Made by a program: the position numbers and the translations under genes
The notes under the pieces: model-generated
The model's database searches: none
What the model saw: only the letters and a program-made list of their open reading frames with translations
Told to the model about the DNA's origin: nothing
Part shown: piece after piece, positions 17,559-45,050 of the stretch
How the letters are laid out: the number at the start of each line of letters is the position of its first letter
Position numbering within the stretch: the first letter of the stretch is position 1
Origin: Utricularia gibba
Taxonomy: Eukaryota; Plantae; Magnoliophyta
Assembly (NCBI GenBank): GCA_002189035.1
Contig: CM007991.1
Location: 1,550,001 to 1,614,000 of the forward strand
Length of the DNA: 64,000 nt
Direction: 5' to 3'

Positions 17559-20500
17559 GCCCGCTCATTCTGAGGCGCAGCAAGGAGATAAACTGTGGAA
17601 CGAGGCAGGGGTCTGAGCCATTCCTGGGAAATGAGAGCAAGAGGGCAATGCGAACCGGAAAAGAGGGATGAGAGATTTTGTGGAAGCCAGCAAGACAGCC
17701 TTGGCATTCTCTCGTGTTGTATATATGTCTGAAACGAAGCATGTGTTGGTGTGCGTAAGCGCCGAGCGGGAATTAAGAATTAAAAATTGGGAAAAAATAC
17801 AACTAATTATTCATGATGTAAATGACCAATTTGTCCTTTATATCGTAATTATATCCCTAATAAAAACCTTAATATATACATTTAAAGGTAATAAAATAAC
17901 ACACCATACCATTAACAACATTCAACACACAAATGCGATGTCCATAAAATCCAAACTAACATCATTTCTATCACCATGCCATTAGTCACATGGGTCAGTC
18001 CCATACGTTGATAATTGATTCCGTACAGAAAATAAGTTTATATAAAATTAGAATAAATAGTAAAATGATAAATAAAAATATTATAATATAATATTCTATA
18101 ATTTATAAAATTAAAATTATTTCATAAATAAAAATAAAAATGTATTGTATTATGTAAAATTATTAATTTTTACTATTAAAAATGAGAAATAAAAATAAAA
18201 TTATTTCGAACACATTCTTAACGTTACAATCCAATAAACTTAATACTTCCTTTTGGCATGTGCTTTATCATTTGAAATTGATTTTTTCACGTTTTAAAAT
18301 AATGTTTTATTGTCAAATATAATTGAATATATATTTCAAAAAAAGTATTTTTTTTAATAAATTGAAAAGCCCCATGTGTTGGCATGTCATTTACTATATA
18401 ATCAGATGGTGTGATGATTCTGTCTCTGCGCTAGTTTGGTCGCGGTAAAACTGCATAGCATTTGACCCACGCTCTCGCTTTTCCTCTTTTGCATCACGCT
18501 CTTCCTTCCTCTTCCCCCCATGCCCTCTTCCTTTCTTGGTTGAATGAATACCTTTTTTACCTCGTTAACCGTGAGTTTTACTGCACTACTTCATTACAGT
18601 AATGATCAGGGTTTGCCTCAGGAGGAGATAAAAAGGGAAATGGGTGTTGTTGGGGAGGAGGGGTTAAGAAGCTAGGCAGGATGTGTGAAAAACTTGAATC
18701 TTGCAAGTGGAAAATATGTAAAGGACACACGAAAATCTGACTGCTAACAGCTTGTCTACAGGAAACTAGCAGATTGGATTTGTGTAAACTTGGAAAACTC
18801 CGTGTTGTGGTGCTCTGATATGACTATACCAAGAGTGCTTGGAAAACTTGATCATGTCGTTACGAAGCAAGTTCATGGCATTCTCCCAGTGCACAGAAAA
18901 AGAGGACATGAATAATTAGAAGAAGAAGACGAGGAAAAGAACAAAAGGGGAAGAAGGCAATGACCCCCCTTGGAGAATTCAGACCTTTTCTCATGGAGAA
19001 AATTAGGTCAAAGGTTTTTCAGACAAGGGAAGGTTTTTTCCCAACTTCCCTGCGTCTTTGTCTACGACTCTTGCCACTCCATAGCTTTTCTTCCTTTCTT
19101 GATATCCCAGATCTCGATGGGGCTCTGACTCTGGACTTCCTCCTCACCCCAACCAACAAACTTAAAATAAACCCAAAAATCTACACTAATTATTCATTTC
19201 GTTTCATGGGTTGTTGAAGAATTGAAACCACTCCCCAAACTCGCCCCGAAAAATCCAACATGGACCGTAACCATCTTTTACTTCTAAACACTAAAGTAAA
19301 AGTTTTATATTGATATTGACATTTTTTATATTAATAAAACAAATATAAATAATTGTGTCCAATAGGATGATGCCTTCATTACAAGATTAGTGTAATATTT
19401 GTTTGAGTGCAGGGTAGAAAAAGGACACAAAAAAGCCCCTGCGTCCCCCTCGGGGTCTTAAAAAAGAAAAAGGAGACGCAAATATTTTTGTTTTGTCTTG
19501 CTTCTAGGCTTGTTTTATAGGATGGGGGTTGGTTGGGACTTTAGGCATCGGACGTACGTACAATCATTATTTTTTATGAAATAATATGGAAAATATTTTA
19601 ATATTTGAAAATAAAGGAGCATTTAATCTAGTACATTTAATTAAATATAATTAATTGTGACATAATAAATTGTTTTTTTTAAAAAAGGAAGTTTTGCTGG
19701 ATCGGGCATACACACCGCACGTTGAAATTGATTTAATGGTGGCCGTCGATTTCGATCCCCCAGGATCTCAATGATGCATAAGAAACACCATCTGTGTATT
19801 GAGCTGTTGGATTTCCTTACCATATGCGTTGGGCCTGAAGCCCAATTACGTCGCTGTCCGGAGCCCAGTTTCCAATCCGTGTAATTTTAGGACTACGTCC
19901 ATTGTAAGTAAATCCATTGCTAATAATCTGCTCCATCCCGATACTATTACTGTAACTGTGATCTCATCCGTCGAAGGTTTTATTTTATTGTTCCGGTTAA
20001 GACTGGCTCGAAGTGTTAAAGAAGGAAACTTCACATGTGGGAGATGCATCTGTGGTTATTTTGTTTATTTGGAGTGAAAACGGCGTTGGCTTCGAATCCG
20101 ACACTGCTGTGCATCTGTCATACTGTTTGATGTGGTAAAAGTTAAACTGTAACATGCATAACAGTTTTACTTAAGCACCCAGCCCATATTCTTGCGGTTC
20201 ACGGCGGTGAATTCTGAAAGAGTAGGTGGGGGGGAGGGAGGTGAAAGAAGTTGTGTATAAGATGGGGTCTTGCCAACTCAGTGTTCGATGGATGCTCTCT
20301 TTAGAGGTGAGCGTGAAGGACCACCCATTAGTTGTCCTGGTGGGGCTGGGACAGAGCCTCTTCATGTCTGCAATTATTTTGATTCTTGTCCATTTTTTTT
20401 TTCCTCTATCAAACTCTGCAACTTGTTTCTCCTCCTTTTACCGCATCTCTCAGGGGTTTCACTGTCACCATTTCGAATGCCGACGCCCCAAAATCCCCTT

Positions 20501-28238: not shown

Positions 28239-29040
28239 CATTGCCGGCAACGGTGAATCATAATATATATATTTAATTAAAAATCCTAATATTTTATTAA
28301 ATAAATTACTGTACCAACACAACTCCAAAATGTTTCTATTAAGTTACTGGTTTTATTCTTTTGTGAATTATTTATTTGTGGTTCATATTATAAGAAGTAT
28401 GATTGTGTCATATCAAGGACAAGCATCTAGCATGAGAAGTGGTGTCACAATTTGCCTCTTATCTCGGATTATACTATTTTATTCTCATATAAGATGAATG
28501 AGAGATAACATAAGGTATGTGTCACGGTCACTGCAACCTGTGACAATGTCGTTACCGTAGGTACAACAATAGTATGTTGCGTACATGAATGATTCATTAC
28601 TGAGAATCTCGTATGTGCCCAACAAAATATCAAGAATATCCATAGTTGATTTTAATTCAAAATTGAAAAATCATCAAAAAAATTAACAAAAACCCATTAA
28701 TTATTTTTAACTTTTTTATTGTTAAAAACAAAAAAAATTGATAAAAAAAAAAGATATCCATGGAGTTACATGGTTATAGTTATGACTGGACAGTGTGTTG
28801 TCACGTTAGTGGATGGATTTTCGTATTTAAAAAATGATTATTATAAAAAAAACAAATTATTTTTGGAATTGCGGAGGGTGCGTTAACAGTACAAAAATGA
28901 TTCCTCCGGCTCAATATATATCTGCGTATCCTCCGAAGGGATGAAAGGACACGTATCCGTGGTAGTATGACACGGGAGCTTCTCTTCTCGCCGCCTCGGT
29001 CAAATCCCTGATCTGAATGAAGAATTCCCTCCAATCCGCC

Positions 29041-29517
29041 ATGGAAACTGCTTGCTGTACCTCGTCCTCCGCCTCTTCGTCCAGTTCAGAGACGTCGAAG
29101 AAGAAGGGGCGGGAGCACCCACCGGACAGGCCCTACAGAGGGATCCGTATGAGGAAGTGGGGGAAATGGGTGGCCGAAATCAGGGAACCCAATAAGCGAA
29201 CCAGAATCTGGCTCGGCTCCTACTCCACCCCGATCGCCGCCGCCCGCGCCTACGACACCGCCTTGTTCTACCTCCGTGGCCCCAACGCCCGTCTCAACTT
29301 TCCGGAGTTTATACTGAAGGAGGACCGCGTGAATCAGCGCCCACACGATCTATCCGCCGCCGCGATACGGAAGAAGGCCACCGAGATCGGCGCCATGGTC
29401 GACGCGCTCCATTCCTCCTCCCCAGGCAGCGGCGCTAACGATTCCCGGGTCCGCGAGAAACCCGATTTGAACCAGTACCCTAGCCCCGAGAATTCCGAAG
29501 GCGAAGAAGATAATTGA
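29041..29517 (+). CDS. DREB A-5 / DEAR (RAP2.1-like) AP2/ERF repressor, intronless (alternative start 29017)
   Basis: AP2 domain [50 protein letters not shown], and the EAR motif PDLNQYP. Confidence 0.94.
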
Positions 29518-34467: not shown

Positions 34468-34779
34468 CTATGGTGTAAAATGAGAGGAGGGGTTGTTGCG
34501 TACAGTGAGAGAGAAGCAAGATCTTCTTCTTCTAGCATTATGCATCTCCAGCGCCATGGACACCTTGGCAGCCAATTCCCGGTCGGTAAAGATCCGGCCG
34601 CCGTGGGTGTCCGAGAGGAAGGCCGTCCGGTGGACGGGCGGAGACCAGAGCCCGCTCGTGGCGTAATCGAAGTCGAACTCGGACACGTCGGAGAACTTGG
34701 AGAGAAGGCGCCGGGACACGGAGTTGGAGACGAGCTGGATGCGAAGGTGATGGGACGTCGAGGGATCGGAGGACGCCAT
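34468..34779 (-). CDS. small conserved plant protein of unknown function; 3' end uncertain (possible donor at 34503)
   Basis: GC-rich codon-like [58 protein letters not shown], resembling an uncharacterised plant family as recalled (EFDFDY..S.IWSPP). Confidence 0.7.
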
Positions 34780-35941
34780 TTTTCTGTGGCACAGAACACA
34801 AATGCAAAAAAGCCCGATGATCCAAGCGAAGAAAGAAAGCAACGCTGAAAAGCGGTTTGGTGGCACGCACCTTGTCGCCCATTCATCAAATATATTATTA
34901 TTATTATAATTATTATTGTTATTAATTTTACCAGTCCCCCACACATTTTAAAAATCCGCCTTATTACGTGTCGCCCGAAAAGCAATTAAAAATCCAGAAA
35001 CAAAAAGAAAATCAACATATTTTAGTTTATTTTATTTTTAATATCACTCAATCCAAAATTTAAATTTTAAATACAAATGATATAAAATAGGGTTGTCATC
35101 TCCCGGCGTCATCTAAAAAAGTGGGTATTTACTGATTTTATACTACACATTAAAAAAAATGAATATTTAAAATATTTATTTTTTTTCATTTTCTAAATAT
35201 TATATGTGCATGTAAATAATGCAGGAATTGTACTCACATTTTAAAATGCATCTAACTCAGACAATAAATGGCTTTAAAATCCACATTGAATTCCACAATA
35301 ATTAAGGATGCAGCCACCTGCCCATGCTGCACCATACTTCATCAATATTTCAAAATTATGAGGGCTATTTTATCCTTTTAGATTTTCATTGTCCAAAAAA
35401 ATATATTTTTTTTCAAAATTGAAAATTTCTGTTTTTGAGCTCATCAATTATTCATAATAAGATTGGTACTAACTCTTAGGCCTTGTTTGTATGAATGAAA
35501 TATTATTTGATTTTAAATAGCATATTTTTAGTAAATAATGATATTATAGTATCATAGATTACATATCCAACAAATTTTATTATTTTAAAATTTGTGTACA
35601 TTAATTATATAATATAGATATTCTAATAATATTATAGATAATTATAATTATAACAATTTATATCAAATGAAAATTTCTGTAAAATATTTTTGAAATTATT
35701 TACTTTTATCTGAATTAATTTCATTCGTATTTAATATCAATAATCTTAGTTTTTGGTTGCCATGGGATTTCTATATTAAAACAGGGATAATTTTTTAATG
35801 GGAAATAAGTAATTATTTGAATGAACTATTTTTGATTTAAAAATAATAAATCTGACCATGAAAAAAGAAAAATAATCAGTGTGTTTGGAGGACAGATGAA
35901 GGAATTTTTGCGATGGCGATGTGCAGCATTGAAAAACTGTG

Positions 35942-36043
35942 AGAGTGAGTAGCAGGGCAATTCTCCTTTGGCATGCTCCAGCCCCATGCACATGCACAGC
36001 AATTCCTGCATGCCAAAGGAGAATCGCACTCCTACTCATACTC
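35942..36043 (-). ncRNA. MIR399: MIR399 precursor hairpin; mature UGCCAAAGGAGAAUUGCCCUG at 35973-35953, star at 36029-36009
   Basis: Minus-strand 3' arm equals a canonical miR399 sequence. The duplex with gtgcgattctcctttggcatg pairs at 19 of the 21 mature positions (one G-U), and the lower stem continues (ctactca/tgagtag). Confidence 0.95.
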
Positions 36044-36183
36044 CCACACCTCCGCCTGCCTACGTCCATGTCCATCTGAATATCATTCCGGCGGCGAAGA
36101 GCTCCGGCGTCTGCGGTCGCCGGCGCTGCACATGGGCAACAGAAGGTGAGAGGAGGCAGGTATATAAAGGGGCACCCGGGGTT

Positions 36184-36898
36184 GGATATGCCAGGGAATG
36201 ACACCAGAGAAGGCATATACTGTGGACTCTTCACCTACCCTTCTTTTCCTGTTGGTAGGAGGATATGCTGTGTTTTACACCATGAAACCTCGTTTTTTCG
36301 CTTTCCCTAGCGACTCCTGACATCCGATTCCTCACATGGGATATCCAATTTAACAGAAGATGAACTCTGTTACGATCTGATGAGATGCCTAATTGCTGAC
36401 TGATCATGTGTTTTCTTTTTCATTTTGCTGCGTGATGCGCAGTCGTAGTTCAAGAAGGTTACAGTCGGTTTCTTTGAATTTCCAACGTGCTCGAGTTGCC
36501 TCATCGGCATAAGATTTTGGATATGCCATGAGTCACCAAAGTGAGGAGGTATATGCTGGGAACTATCCTTGAGGAAGAATCTGCTTTCGAGCTGTAAGAT
36601 TCAGTCTGCATGTAGGCTTTCCATGCATCACAACTTACGTGCACAATCACCAAACCCTAAACCCAAAACATAGAGATTGAAAAACCCTAAATATTGGCTT
36701 GCCATGCATCATTACCTGGCCTTGTTAAAAAATACAGGATTTACAGGTTCACTAGGATAGTGTGTAATGTGTGTATGTATGCCTATGAATGTGTAAGTGG
36801 GATGGGAGCTTCAGATCTGCAGTGGAGTAAGGGAAGAAGTATGTGAAAAATGAGAGTTGATCAATTGAGAGTATGGATATGAGCATATAAGAATATGC
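36184..36898. promoter_or_regulatory. cluster of seven P1BS (PHR1-binding GNATATNC) elements in the shared MIR399 promoter
   Basis: GGATATGC 36184, GCATATAC 36213, GGATATGC 36261, GGATATCC 36339, GGATATGC 36519, GTATATGC 36549, GAATATGC 36891. TATA-like boxes at 36171 (TATATA) and 36923 (TATTTAAA). Confidence 0.88.
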
Positions 36899-37017
36899 GG
36901 GGAGAAGAAGCAGAAAGCACTCTATTTAAACGCAATGGCAGCCATTTTTCTTTCTGTGGAGCAACACACAAGCATTACATCTGCAGGGAGTTCTGACAAA
37001 GGAGAAGAAGGTACGAG

Positions 37018-37116
37018 TGCATCATGGGGCAAATACTCCATTGGCAGGAGCTGAATTTCAGCTTGCATCAGCCTGGTTCCAGCGACCCTGCCAAAGGAGA
37101 TTTGCCCCACAATGCA
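37018..37116 (+). ncRNA. MIR399: MIR399 precursor hairpin; mature UGCCAAAGGAGAUUUGCCCCA at 37089-37109
   Basis: 3' arm matches the miR399 consensus. 5' arm ggggcaaatactccattggca (37026-37046) pairs with one mismatch and one bulge. TATA and P1BS lie directly upstream. Confidence 0.95.
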
Positions 37117-37466
37117 GATGTACTTGCGAACAACGCACGATGGCACCCTCGAGTGGAGTGTTCAACATTCATGTTTTTCTAAGTGCATCTTTGAGGAACA
37201 AGGAGGATAGTGTAAGTCTTGGCATAACTGATCAATCTTTTTCATAACATGGGACAGGGAAAAGGCATACCATGTAGAATGCATAGATGGAAGCCGAAGG
37301 CAGTACCATCACCGACCACTCAGTTGGCCTGGGCTGGAGCAATCAGTAATTTACAAATTTGCTGTCCTGTGTTTTTACAGAAGGTTACAGGCTGTTCTGA
37401 AAGCTGACTTTCAGGTTCGCCGCCATCAATCAGTACATGGAACAAGGAACTGGAATTGGAACACAT

Positions 37467-38299
37467 TCATACAGAGAGCACGTTCATATGGACAAACCAT
37501 GGAAGGACAAATGCAATGGTAAGGCAGAGAGTGAGCAACCAACATAGCAGTTTGTCATTGAAGAATCTTCTTGATGAAGATGATAAATTTGAACCAAGAT
37601 CAGCTGATATCATGATCTCCACAGCTCTGTTTTCTAAGACAACACTCGTCGCAATTTCACCACATATCTCACACGATCTGAAATATCAAGTTGAAGAAAA
37701 TCACTATATCTGAATCCTAAACTCAAGATAGCAAAGAAACAGCGCATAACACCTGTTCAGCCAGTATCCATCAAAACAGAAAAGAAATGCTAACAAATTA
37801 CTGCATAGTGAAAACTTCAGAACCAGTTACCAAGGCCACATTGAATAAAAAGAAAGATCACTCGAATATTACAACAAGATACCAATTGCAATTGTACAGC
37901 ACAACTCAGAAACTATGGAATGTTAACTTCCGTCAATATGCAAAACTTGCTTAATTTACTCTGTTTTTGAACTAGAAAACAAACCACGAGAAAGAATGAA
38001 TACCTGTTTCCCTTTACCCTGAACCAGGACTCAGCACAGTGGGGATGCGCAACTCCGAGTTCTCCTTTACAACCACACCCCAATTCAATCAAATCATTCC
38101 CAATTTTGCCAATCTCCTGCCCACCCAGTTGACAAATTCTACAAATCCTCTGATCCTCACACTCGTTAACTTCAATGTTGCAAGATGGAACTTGTTCATC
38201 TCCCTCACTTGTACCAACGTGCTTCTCCTCCCCAATTTCGGCCGGATTTTCTCCGGCAGGGGCTAGTCCGGGAGCAGCTTCGCCGGGCCTTGGATACAT
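37467..38299 (-). CDS. RING-CH (RINGv/MARCH-type) E3 ligase with C-terminal hydrophobic segment; exons 38299-38004, 37677-37467; start uncertain
   Basis: C4HC3 pattern CRIC..CGCKGELGVAHPHC..WFRVKGNR|SCEIC, ending KLLCWLLTLCLTIAFVLPWFVHMNVLSV*. Confidence 0.88.

Positions 38300-42682: not shown

Positions 42683-45050
<2,368 letters not shown>

Follow-up and report, generated by a model that had tools for sequence, protein, structure and literature searches.

The window analysed here, a stretch of 64,000 nt of Utricularia gibba DNA, contains two predicted miR399 genes that point away from each other across a spacer with repeated P1BS elements, and the question that this locus raises is whether the spacer acts as a single regulatory unit or represents two adjoining promoters. 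P1BS elements are present in miR399 promoters and pri-miR399 is induced by Pi starvation (PMC3355690); induction increases with the number and proximity of P1BS (PMC4991007), of which Pi-starvation-induced promoters typically carry one to three (PMC4991007, PMC7941915), while the short motif alone over-predicts PHR targets, being found in 30-40% of control promoters (PMC4991007). Since P1BS promoters at MIR399 genes belong to textbook phosphate signalling, the Utricularia locus itself is expected; the original prediction went further and proposed one compact bidirectional phosphate switch, producing two miR399 isoforms, with an unusually dense P1BS battery.

Two hairpins, designated A13 and U13 for the nucleotide at position 13 of their predicted mature miRNAs, define the genes, which are divergent, with 5' ends facing and hairpins 973 bp apart. 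Their features are as follows.

35943-36041, minus strand: precursor hairpin of the A13 MIR399 gene, distal to a neighbouring RINGv gene (Rfam RF00445, 59.1 bits, E 2.7e-11)
35953-35973, minus strand: predicted mature miR399 of the A13 gene, 3' arm, TGCCAAAGGAGAATTGCCCTG (exact miR399 pattern, 19 of 21 nt paired)
36011-36029, minus strand: predicted miR399* region on the 5' arm of the A13 hairpin (complement of the mature with two mismatches; pairing in the fold)
37015-37119, plus strand: precursor hairpin of the U13 MIR399 gene, the nearer of the two to RINGv (Rfam RF00445, 71.8 bits, E 4.9e-15)
37089-37109, plus strand: predicted mature miR399 of the U13 gene, 3' arm, TGCCAAAGGAGATTTGCCCCA (miR399 pattern, 20 of 21 nt paired)

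Both hairpins pass the gathering score of the curated RF00445 covariance model (57 bits), the A13 hairpin by a margin of only 2 bits, and both folds are far more stable than those of shuffled sequences (MFE -68.5 kcal/mol and z -8.7 for A13, -62.7 kcal/mol and z -8.0 for U13; none of 200 shuffles was as good in either case). The canonical miR399 pattern, which begins with UGCCAAAGGAGANUUGCCC and has a 5' U, matches exactly at 35955-35973 (minus) and 37089-37107 (plus), and the folds together with the Rfam alignment assign both matures to the 3' arm. A match to RF00445 on the antisense strand of the U13 hairpin (60.8 bits) reflects hairpin symmetry only, because the miR399 of that strand would carry an inserted base. 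The predicted pair of hairpins pointing apart was thus confirmed by the covariance model and the folds, and pattern matching placed the matures where they had been predicted, at 35973-35953 and 37089-37109. By sequence, both hairpins are genuine MIR399 genes that encode two isoforms, as had also been proposed; position 13, at which they differ, has been reported to influence how pairing is divided between PHO2 sites and the IPS1 decoy (PMC3355690).

These data also bear on the suggestion that one hairpin, with either U13 or A13 as the likelier candidate, is decaying or poorly processed, so that the locus effectively yields one miR399. The CCA 3' end of the U13 mature is unique, occurring in no other hairpin of our MIR399 sample, and a literature search for this end or for TGCCAAAGGAGATTTGCCCCA found no paper; the A13 score is close to the threshold, and the pair is missing from this place in four relatives (see below). 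However, both hairpins have intact stems in which mismatches are few and the free energy is very low, both matures are canonical over positions 1-19, and both genes have kept a TATA box and conserved P1BS, which makes loss of one product improbable. Since the fold places the last two nucleotides of the U13 mature in an internal loop, its exact 3' end is a prediction. No miR399-complementary stretches were found in the 64-kb window besides the hairpin arms themselves, and PHO2 is located outside it.

Between the hairpins, exact matches to the P1BS motif GNATATNC and two TATA-like boxes are arranged as follows, from the A13 to the U13 side.

36161-36168, minus strand: A13 TATA-like box, reading TATATAA on the plus strand, identified from sequence, with the hairpin about 120 nt downstream
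36184-36191, no strand: P1BS GGATATGC, A13-proximal site 1, aligned with the same octamer in both Rehmannia and Populus
36213-36220, no strand: P1BS GCATATAC, A13-proximal site 2, aligned with GCATATGC of Rehmannia and Perilla
36261-36268, no strand: P1BS GGATATGC, A13-proximal site 3, aligned with GGATATGC of Rehmannia
36339-36346, no strand: P1BS GGATATCC, A13-proximal site 4, an exact motif match
36519-36526, no strand: central P1BS GGATATGC, aligned with a central GAATATGC of Populus with flanks alike at 18 of 24; overlapped by a PHO element, ATGCCAT, at 36523-36529
36549-36556, no strand: central P1BS GTATATGC, an exact match 30 bp from the site at 36519
36875-36890, no strand: two P1BS-like octamers with one mismatch each, GGATATGA and GCATATAA, in tandem with the site at 36891
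36891-36898, no strand: P1BS GAATATGC, U13-proximal site, an exact match that aligns with relatives
36923-36930, plus strand: TATA-like box TATTTAAA of the U13 gene, identified from sequence, with the hairpin base about 85 nt downstream

The predicted count of seven P1BS in about 715 bp was therefore correct, and the accompanying chance estimate of 0.2-0.3 was reproduced, as base composition gives an expectation of 0.28 and 5000 dinucleotide shuffles of the spacer one of 0.26, with no shuffle containing more than three. In the other 63 kb of the window there are 14 P1BS, giving a Poisson probability of 3.6e-9 for at least seven in the spacer. A P1BS had also been placed close to each TATA-like box, and this was upheld at both genes: the site at 36184 is 16 bp from the A13 box and that at 36891-36898 is followed after 25 bp by the U13 box, which is located at 36923 as predicted, although the A13 box lies at 36161-36168 rather than at 36171. 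The two boxes are about 755 bp apart, with TSSs placed from the TATA boxes only, and 350-390 bp separate the central pair (36519/36549) from each box. One further P1BS pair in the window, at 43057/43089, was considered as a second Pi-starvation promoter and rejected, as it lies inside a GSK3/shaggy-like kinase gene.

Whether this arrangement is peculiar to Utricularia was addressed through the genes surrounding it. Best matches for both an ERF gene (29017-29517) and a RINGv gene were found in Lamiales, and the latter served as the synteny anchor, with exon 1 alone as the database query.

37467-38299, minus strand: two-exon RINGv gene, convergent with the U13 gene (Pfam PF12906, E 3e-8)

Its exons, 38299-38003 and 37679-37467, were delimited by tblastn with Lamiales orthologues. 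A protein search with exon 1 gave 569 unspecific RING-CH matches and singled out no Arabidopsis orthologue. Arabidopsis MIR399D/E/F may lie next to a RING/FYVE/PHD gene and some 165 kb from PHO2; a main-text literature search found no mention of AT2G34200. The ERF gene was dropped as an anchor, as its counterparts in Sesamum (L001 and L002) have different neighbours and no MIR399 within 10 kb, and the same was found for a small unknown-protein gene (34471-34782) in Sesamum, Handroanthus, and Penstemon (L003-L005).

With the RINGv anchor, the same divergent MIR399 pair was found beside the orthologous RINGv gene in Rehmannia glutinosa (L006) and Perilla frutescens (L012), in the order RINGv, U13 gene, and A13 gene beyond. 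Divergent U13/A13 pairs are also found on chromosome 4 of Populus trichocarpa (loci L044, L091, and L112, with L091 being the same locus as L044 and the species assigned from an exact protein match) and on a further plant contig (L075), and Rfam confirms the MIR399 hairpins of L044 and L075; tblastn detected no RINGv gene beside the poplar or L075 pairs (for L091, over 11 kb on the U13 side). Synteny of the pair, suggested earlier as a check, is thus found in Rehmannia and Perilla, and the pair itself recurs in Populus. Every pair consists of one gene with A and one with U at position 13. Hairpins group by isoform and not by species (mean identity 0.62-0.63 within an isoform type vs. 0.52 between types): orthologous A13 hairpins are present in Rehmannia, Perilla, and Populus, the U13 hairpin clusters with the U13 hairpins of relatives, and the A13 mature TGCCAAAGGAGAATTGCCCTG is identical in the partner genes of Rehmannia, Populus, and L075. 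The Populus, Rehmannia, and Perilla pairs are, on these comparisons, most likely orthologues of the Utricularia pair.

The neighbourhood also varies among Lamiales. A tRNA-Glu(CTC) gene that lies between RINGv and the pair in the Lamiales relatives is absent at the Utricularia locus, and Perilla has an additional duplicate of the tRNA plus U13 unit. In Erythranthe, Salvia, Sesamum latifolium, and Striga, the RINGv and tRNA-Glu neighbourhood was found with no MIR399 within 10 kb, suggesting that the pair is dispensable there or that these loci are duplicates that lost it. The RINGv gene with the highest identity is on a Genlisea aurea contig (L134) of only 2.8 kb, which ends in AT-rich repeats and on which no MIR399 was found.

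Like the Populus, Rehmannia, and Perilla pairs, the Utricularia pair combines divergent U13 and A13 genes with tandem GGATATGC-type sites about 200-240 nt from the A13 mature, one GAATATGC-type site about 190-236 nt before the U13 mature, and central sites. The sites at 36184, 36213, 36261, and 36519 and the block 36875-36898 each have aligned counterparts in at least one of Rehmannia, Perilla, and Populus, while the remainder of the spacer is unalignable between Utricularia and these relatives. On the A13 side, P1BS are found 211, 240, and 288 nt from the mature (211 nt for 36184, counted from the 5' end of the mature; 288 nt for 36261), compared to 204, 225, and 295 nt in Rehmannia and 197 and 220 nt in Populus, and where the A13 gene has its TATA-like box, the aligned Rehmannia sequence has a TATATA run. 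On the U13 side, a P1BS precedes the mature by 190-236 nt in all five pairs (190 nt here, 221 in Rehmannia, 236 in Perilla, 200 in Populus, and 222 in L075), the octamers at 36875-36890 belong to a conserved tandem block that Rehmannia and the two Perilla copies also have upstream of U13, and a TATAAAT or TATATA is similarly spaced at the U13 genes of relatives. For the site at 36339, no aligned counterpart was found in the compared pairs, with a Perilla site at a similar distance, and a second central P1BS is also found in Populus and Perilla, without alignment to 36549. Identical P1BS that align within an otherwise unalignable spacer argue for selection on PHR-type binding, and their positional conservation in orthologous pairs constitutes good indirect evidence for PHR-type control of the pair.

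The same data allow the possibility of a chance cluster, i.e., a by-product of base composition with no regulatory role, to be judged. While GNATATNC fixes just six bases and the 14 other copies in the window (e.g., 43057/43089) have no obvious meaning, seven sites are far above the 0.26 expected and the maximum of three among the shuffles, conservation in three other genera extends from the positions to the asymmetric variant GGATATGC itself, and most of 57 MIR399 genes from other plants show the same P1BS placement. The conservation data bring this explanation close to refuted, and we give it practically no credence. It is also very unlikely that the P1BS battery chiefly serves a further Pi-responsive transcript from the spacer, such as a lncRNA or a small ORF, and not only the miRNA genes. 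A duplicated block of about 81 bp in the middle third of the spacer (36600-36720), with two telo-boxes and RY-like CATGCA motifs that are unrelated to the P1BS, could be taken to favor such a transcript; by contrast, no spacer ORF exceeds 58 aa, Rfam gives no match in the spacer other than MIR399, nothing in the window besides the hairpin arms is complementary to miR399, and the conserved P1BS hug the TATA boxes of the two miRNA genes.

To put the density of sites into perspective, we counted P1BS in the 800 bp upstream of 57 MIR399 genes from other plants, i.e., 59 regions with the Utricularia pair. The other genes have a median of two and a maximum of four P1BS per 800 bp, as compared to six for each Utricularia gene, and 52 of the 57 have at least one within 500 bp, mostly about 150-330 nt before the mature; these numbers provide a baseline for claims that a P1BS promoter is dense. 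The original prediction of an unusually dense battery holds insofar as the Utricularia regions rank highest of the 59, although the excess mostly represents spacer shrinkage, in a compact Lamiales genome, plus about two extra sites. Mature-to-mature gaps are 1115 bp here, 1244 bp in L075, 1508 bp in Populus, 1991 bp in Perilla, and 2795 bp in Rehmannia, and the spacers of relatives hold three to five P1BS (five in Populus, five in Rehmannia, and four in Perilla), as opposed to seven here. The high density would thus have arisen because the spacer, in shrinking below 1 kb, retained its ancestral sites and gained about two more. On these comparisons, the back-to-back MIR399 pair is a compact copy of an old and ordinary arrangement that is not special to this genome.

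We consider it likely that the locus comprises two functional, PHR-driven MIR399 genes, each with its own P1BS module and with a further pair of sites midway, which descend from an old A13/U13 couple and whose spacer has shrunk. Transcription would proceed outward from the two TATA boxes, with four exact P1BS forming the module upstream of the A13 box and one exact plus two degenerate sites forming that upstream of the U13 box; the extra pair midway could serve both genes. Under low phosphate, SPX proteins would release PHR1-family MYB-CC factors, dimers of which would bind the imperfect P1BS palindromes and switch on both genes, and the two 21-nt isoforms would then cut PHO2/UBC24 mRNA and derepress phosphate uptake and transport; we infer these steps (TSSs, PHR binding, Pi induction, processing, and targeting) from the established PHR1-miR399-PHO2 pathway. 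The paralogous couple probably goes back at least to the last ancestor shared by rosids and asterids, and the wider spacing in relatives, together with a TATA-proximal P1BS module for each gene, suggests two neighbouring promoters as the ancestral state.

Two divergent genes are usually said to share a bidirectional promoter when their TSSs lie within about 1 kb of each other. Judged by the TATA-to-TATA distance of about 755 bp, the two genes would fall inside this working definition. One bidirectional switch, as in the original prediction, is plausible. In its full form, in which all seven PHR-bound sites work as a unit that both genes require and that drives them, coupling the output of the two isoforms, we regard this interpretation as possible but doubtful. 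The near-palindromic P1BS is without orientation, the central pair 36519/36549 lies about midway, with 36519 conserved in Populus, and a shared bidirectional promoter has been suggested from expression patterns for the co-expressed Arabidopsis MIR395a and MIR395b-c (PMC3511311), which likewise represent a nutrient-starvation miRNA family on opposite strands. Unlike the Utricularia pair, which is known from sequence and conservation, the MIR395 cluster involves another miRNA family, nutrient (sulphate), and transcription factor. On the other hand, close spacing has not been maintained, as the matures of relatives are 1.2-2.8 kb apart, the conserved P1BS adjoin each gene's own TATA box, L075 is without any central site, and lone MIR399 genes elsewhere manage with only a proximal tandem P1BS pair. 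Among the few papers that literature searches returned, no title concerned a bidirectional MIR399 promoter. A bolder version would hold that the A13/U13 pair has formed a single regulatory unit since before the rosid/asterid split, that its spacer, together with a midway P1BS apparently shared with poplar, acts as a common PHR-dependent enhancer and sets the proportion of two isoforms whose preferences between PHO2 and the decoy differ, and that in this very compact genome the unit was squeezed below 1 kb and gained sites to become the strongest MIR399 P1BS battery yet seen; this we consider speculative and unlikely.

Known phosphate-responsive genes offer further comparisons. Like Arabidopsis and rice MIR399 genes of the PHR1-miR399-PHO2 system, the Utricularia genes belong to the same Rfam family, have a 3'-arm mature with a 5' U, and carry P1BS just upstream of the TATA box, while differing from the typical Arabidopsis or rice gene in that two of them share a spacer of less than 1 kb with seven exact P1BS. 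Closely spaced P1BS pairs near the (here inferred) TSS are likewise found in the tandem-P1BS promoters of IPS1, SPX1, and PHT1, and such pairs are units giving strong PHR1-dependent induction (PMC4991007 Table 1; PMC3355690); unlike the Utricularia spacer, these promoters drive single genes and usually have two to three sites. A small new point is that the two isoform genes appear as an old divergent couple recurring in Lamiales and poplar, in which individual PHR sites have apparently kept their positions despite turnover of the spacer around them. The very short Utricularia spacer may thus offer a convenient natural minimal construct for asking which P1BS serve which gene and whether the midway sites work both ways.

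The two MIR399 genes of the window, A13 and U13 (named by the base at position 13 of the mature miRNA), were both recovered with the Rfam model RF00445 (gathering score 57), and no Rfam family other than MIR399 was found across the 64 kb. They lie in the gene order LRR kinase, ERF, small unknown-protein gene, MIR399 A13 (-), MIR399 U13 (+), RINGv (a RING-variant gene, -), and GYF-domain gene.

Features of the MIR399 pair and its surroundings
29017-29517, ERF gene, single exon
34471-34782, minus strand, small unknown-protein gene
35943-36041, minus strand, A13 hairpin (RF00445, 59.1 bits)
35973-35953, minus strand, predicted A13 mature miR399, TGCCAAAGGAGAATTGCCCTG
36161-36168 and 36923-36930, TATA-like boxes
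36184, 36213, 36261, 36339, 36519, 36549, and 36891, exact P1BS, GNATATNC
36875 and 36883, P1BS-like octamers with one mismatch each, in tandem with the 36891 site
37015-37119, plus strand, U13 hairpin (RF00445, 71.8 bits)
37089-37109, plus strand, predicted U13 mature miR399, TGCCAAAGGAGATTTGCCCCA
38299-38003 and 37679-37467, minus strand, RINGv exons

Folding gave long, almost perfectly paired stems for both precursors (-68.5 kcal/mol, z -8.7 for A13; -62.7 kcal/mol, z -8.0 for U13), with none of 200 shuffles as good in either case. Model matches and folds confirm both hairpins of the original prediction, including their mature positions, and their strands place them head to head, pointing apart. 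The U13 hairpin also has an antisense RF00445 match of 60.8 bits, which reflects hairpin symmetry; read antisense, its 3' arm would have an inserted base. As had been proposed, two isoforms are predicted: position 13 is A in one mature and U in the other, and their 3' ends are also unlike. In the A13 pri-miRNA, the predicted 5' leader (36046-36135, minus strand) is unusually GC-rich in AT-rich surroundings and holds a short ATG-started ORF of ~16 codons, possibly of miPEP type, which is not conserved in the Rehmannia alignment.

P1BS is the binding site of PHR1-family MYB-CC proteins, and miR399 guides cleavage of PHO2/UBC24 mRNA, with IPS1/At4 decoys damping miR399. All seven P1BS claimed for the spacer between the hairpins were found as exact sites, and the chance expectation of 0.2-0.3 was reproduced at 0.28 by base composition and 0.26 by dinucleotide shuffling; the highest count in 5000 such shuffles was 3, and the Poisson probability of at least seven sites is 3.6e-9, given 14 sites in the remaining 63 kb. 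Of the TATA-like boxes originally placed, the plus-strand one at 36923 stands, while that of the minus-strand gene lies at 36161-36168 rather than at 36171. Previous studies have reported P1BS in miR399 promoters and induction of pri-miR399 under Pi starvation (PMC3355690), and 1-3 P1BS as typical of Pi-starvation promoters, with more and nearer sites giving stronger induction (PMC4991007; PMC7941915). In 57 MIR399 genes of other plants, a partly redundant set, the 800-bp region upstream of each hairpin contained a median of 2 P1BS (mean 1.8, maximum 4); in 52 of the 57, one or more fell within 500 bp, most often as a tandem pair with a spacing of 20-35 bp immediately before the TATA position. 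Each window gene has 6 in 800 bp because the spacer is common to both, so that the battery is, as first described, unusually dense and indeed the densest in the sample compared.

Other motifs also occur in the spacer. A PHO element, ATGCCAT (36523-36529), overlaps the central P1BS at 36519; in Rehmannia and Perilla, the element occurs as its reverse complement, ATGGCAT, overlapping the second of the A13-proximal P1BS. In barley, the PHO element is reported to be bound by PHR-like factors (PMC7941915). Unrelated to P1BS, the region 36600-36720 carries an ~81-bp direct repeat (GGCTT.CCATGCATCA at 36610-36630 and 36691-36711), RY-like CATGCA motifs, and telo-boxes AAACCCTA at 36652 and 36682, the only two in the 64 kb.

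The ERF and small-protein-gene anchors led to loci without MIR399; the RINGv anchor led to relatives' loci carrying the pair, so that synteny, proposed as a check, was recovered beside RINGv in Rehmannia and Perilla. In Rehmannia glutinosa, RINGv is followed by tRNA-Glu(CTC), an opposite-strand MIR399 (mature ..ATTTGCCCGG), and, 2.6 kb further on the RINGv strand, a second MIR399 whose mature is exactly the window A13 form; Perilla frutescens shares this arrangement and has, in addition, a duplicate of the tRNA together with U13. No MIR399 was found within 10 kb in Erythranthe tilingii, Salvia miltiorrhiza, Sesamum latifolium, or Striga hermonthica, which keep RINGv and the tRNA. Public metagenome contigs scanned for the miR399 core yielded 120 plant-derived stretches and 94 script-called matches with hairpin support (window, Rehmannia, and Perilla counted in), among them two further divergent U13/A13 pairs, both confirmed as MIR399 by Rfam: one on contig L075 and one on Populus trichocarpa chromosome 4 (L044, L091, and L112, assigned by exact match of the neighbouring DUF1685 protein). 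Hairpins cluster by isoform, not species (mean identity 0.62-0.63 within versus 0.52 between types), each type having its own lower-stem signature. This grouping, together with the occurrence of pairs in several plants, indicates that the pair is not peculiar to the U. gibba genome and appears to be an old paralogous couple dating at least from the rosid-asterid ancestor.

Positions of P1BS in five divergent pairs, all oriented as the window (A13-side and midway sites as distances in nt to the 5' end of the A13 mature; U13-side site in nt before the U13 mature)
Window: A13 side 211, 240, 288, 366; midway 546, 576; U13 side 190
Rehmannia: A13 side 204, 225, 295; midway 1758; U13 side 221
Perilla: A13 side 363; midway 638, 731; U13 side 236
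Populus: A13 side 197, 220; midway 687, 699; U13 side 200
L075: A13 side 253, 265; midway none; U13 side 222

In promoter and whole-spacer alignments, Rehmannia and Populus have the same octamer opposite the site at 36184 (GGATATGC). Opposite 36213, Rehmannia and Perilla have GCATATGC, and opposite 36261, Rehmannia has GGATATGC. The tandem block 36875-36898 aligned with tandem P1BS-like motifs in Rehmannia and in each of the two Perilla copies, and the central site 36519 with the central poplar GAATATGC, with flanks alike at 18 of 24 positions. Outside aligned P1BS the spacer is essentially unalignable, a pattern that would be expected of functional binding sites. The window has 7 P1BS in 1.1 kb, and Rehmannia, Perilla, Populus, and L075 have 5, 4, 5, and 3, respectively, with mature-to-mature gaps of 1.2-2.8 kb. 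Five or so of the window sites thus appear inherited and about two (36339 and either 36519 or 36549) extra, the density seemingly owing mainly to spacer loss in a compact genome.

Under low phosphate, both genes would be switched on through the spacer P1BS, and the activated pair would supply two isoforms unlike at position 13. Variation at this position shifts pairing between PHO2 sites and the decoy (PMC3355690). Retention of one A form and one U form in all five pairs suggests that the isoforms are not redundant; PHO2 and the decoy are both located outside the window. The spacer may also act as one bidirectional switch, as originally proposed: the short distance between the genes, the palindromic nature of P1BS, and the pair of sites midway are consistent with a shared switch, but a TATA-proximal module of its own is conserved for each gene, relatives tolerate the wider gaps, and L075 lacks midway sites, all of which argue against such a switch being essential. 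A comparable bidirectional suggestion exists for the Arabidopsis opposite-strand MIR395 cluster (PMC3511311); among the few papers returned by our literature search, no title dealt with a bidirectional MIR399 promoter. The original observation holds in every part, and its interpretation as a whole is partly supported. Judged from sequence, the locus appears to be a MIR399 pair under P1BS control, an already-known type of system, and the added value is modest, i.e., the pair and several single P1BS appear ancient and the U. gibba version is the most compact seen.

The closest relatives of the ERF were from Sesamum, Handroanthus, Andrographis, Perilla, and Salvia (identity up to 74%), which assigns the window to a Lamiales eudicot. 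In searches with the first exon of RINGv, the greatest similarity was to a protein from Genlisea aurea (70-77% across the RING domain), a hint, though no proof, of Lentibulariaceae. U13 and RINGv are convergent, with 348 bp between hairpin end and stop codon (37119-37467); the 3' end of the U13 pri-miRNA must meet or overlap the 3' UTR of RINGv, and antisense interference is therefore possible. In Arabidopsis, PHO2 (At2g33770) is presumably linked, at ~165 kb, to MIR399D/E/F (At2g34202-08), beside a RING-type gene, and it is conceivable that regulator and target have long been linked.

A tRNA gene follows RINGv in all six Lamiales relatives with long flanks (L006, L007, L008, L010, L011, and L012), between RINGv and the MIR399 pair wherever the pair exists; none was seen on the 2.8 kb Genlisea contig (L134) or anywhere in the window. 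ARAGORN identified tRNA-Glu(CTC) at the three loci checked, i.e., Rehmannia L006 (13262-13335), Perilla L012 (12185-12257 and 16818-16893), and Erythranthe L007 (12157-12229); in Perilla, the tRNA and U13 MIR399 are duplicated as one block. Other plant contigs carry convergent MIR399 pairs, in L072/L074 (1968 +, 6042 -; also U13 plus A13, 4 kb apart) and L057 (1418 +, 7784 -), or U13 copies in tandem (L068 and L076). Erythranthe tilingii L007 has four exact P1BS in 216 bp (18129-18344), downstream of the RINGv orthologue at a distance of ~7 kb. Neither MIR399 nor any other Rfam family was found close by, and this cluster could drive a Pi-responsive gene that lies outside the flank retrieved. 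Finally, a Penstemon smallii chromosome record (L005, 20288-20419) matches bacterial 16S rRNA positions 1388-1520 (Rfam, 86.6 bits), probably as an organelle-derived insert or assembly contaminant.
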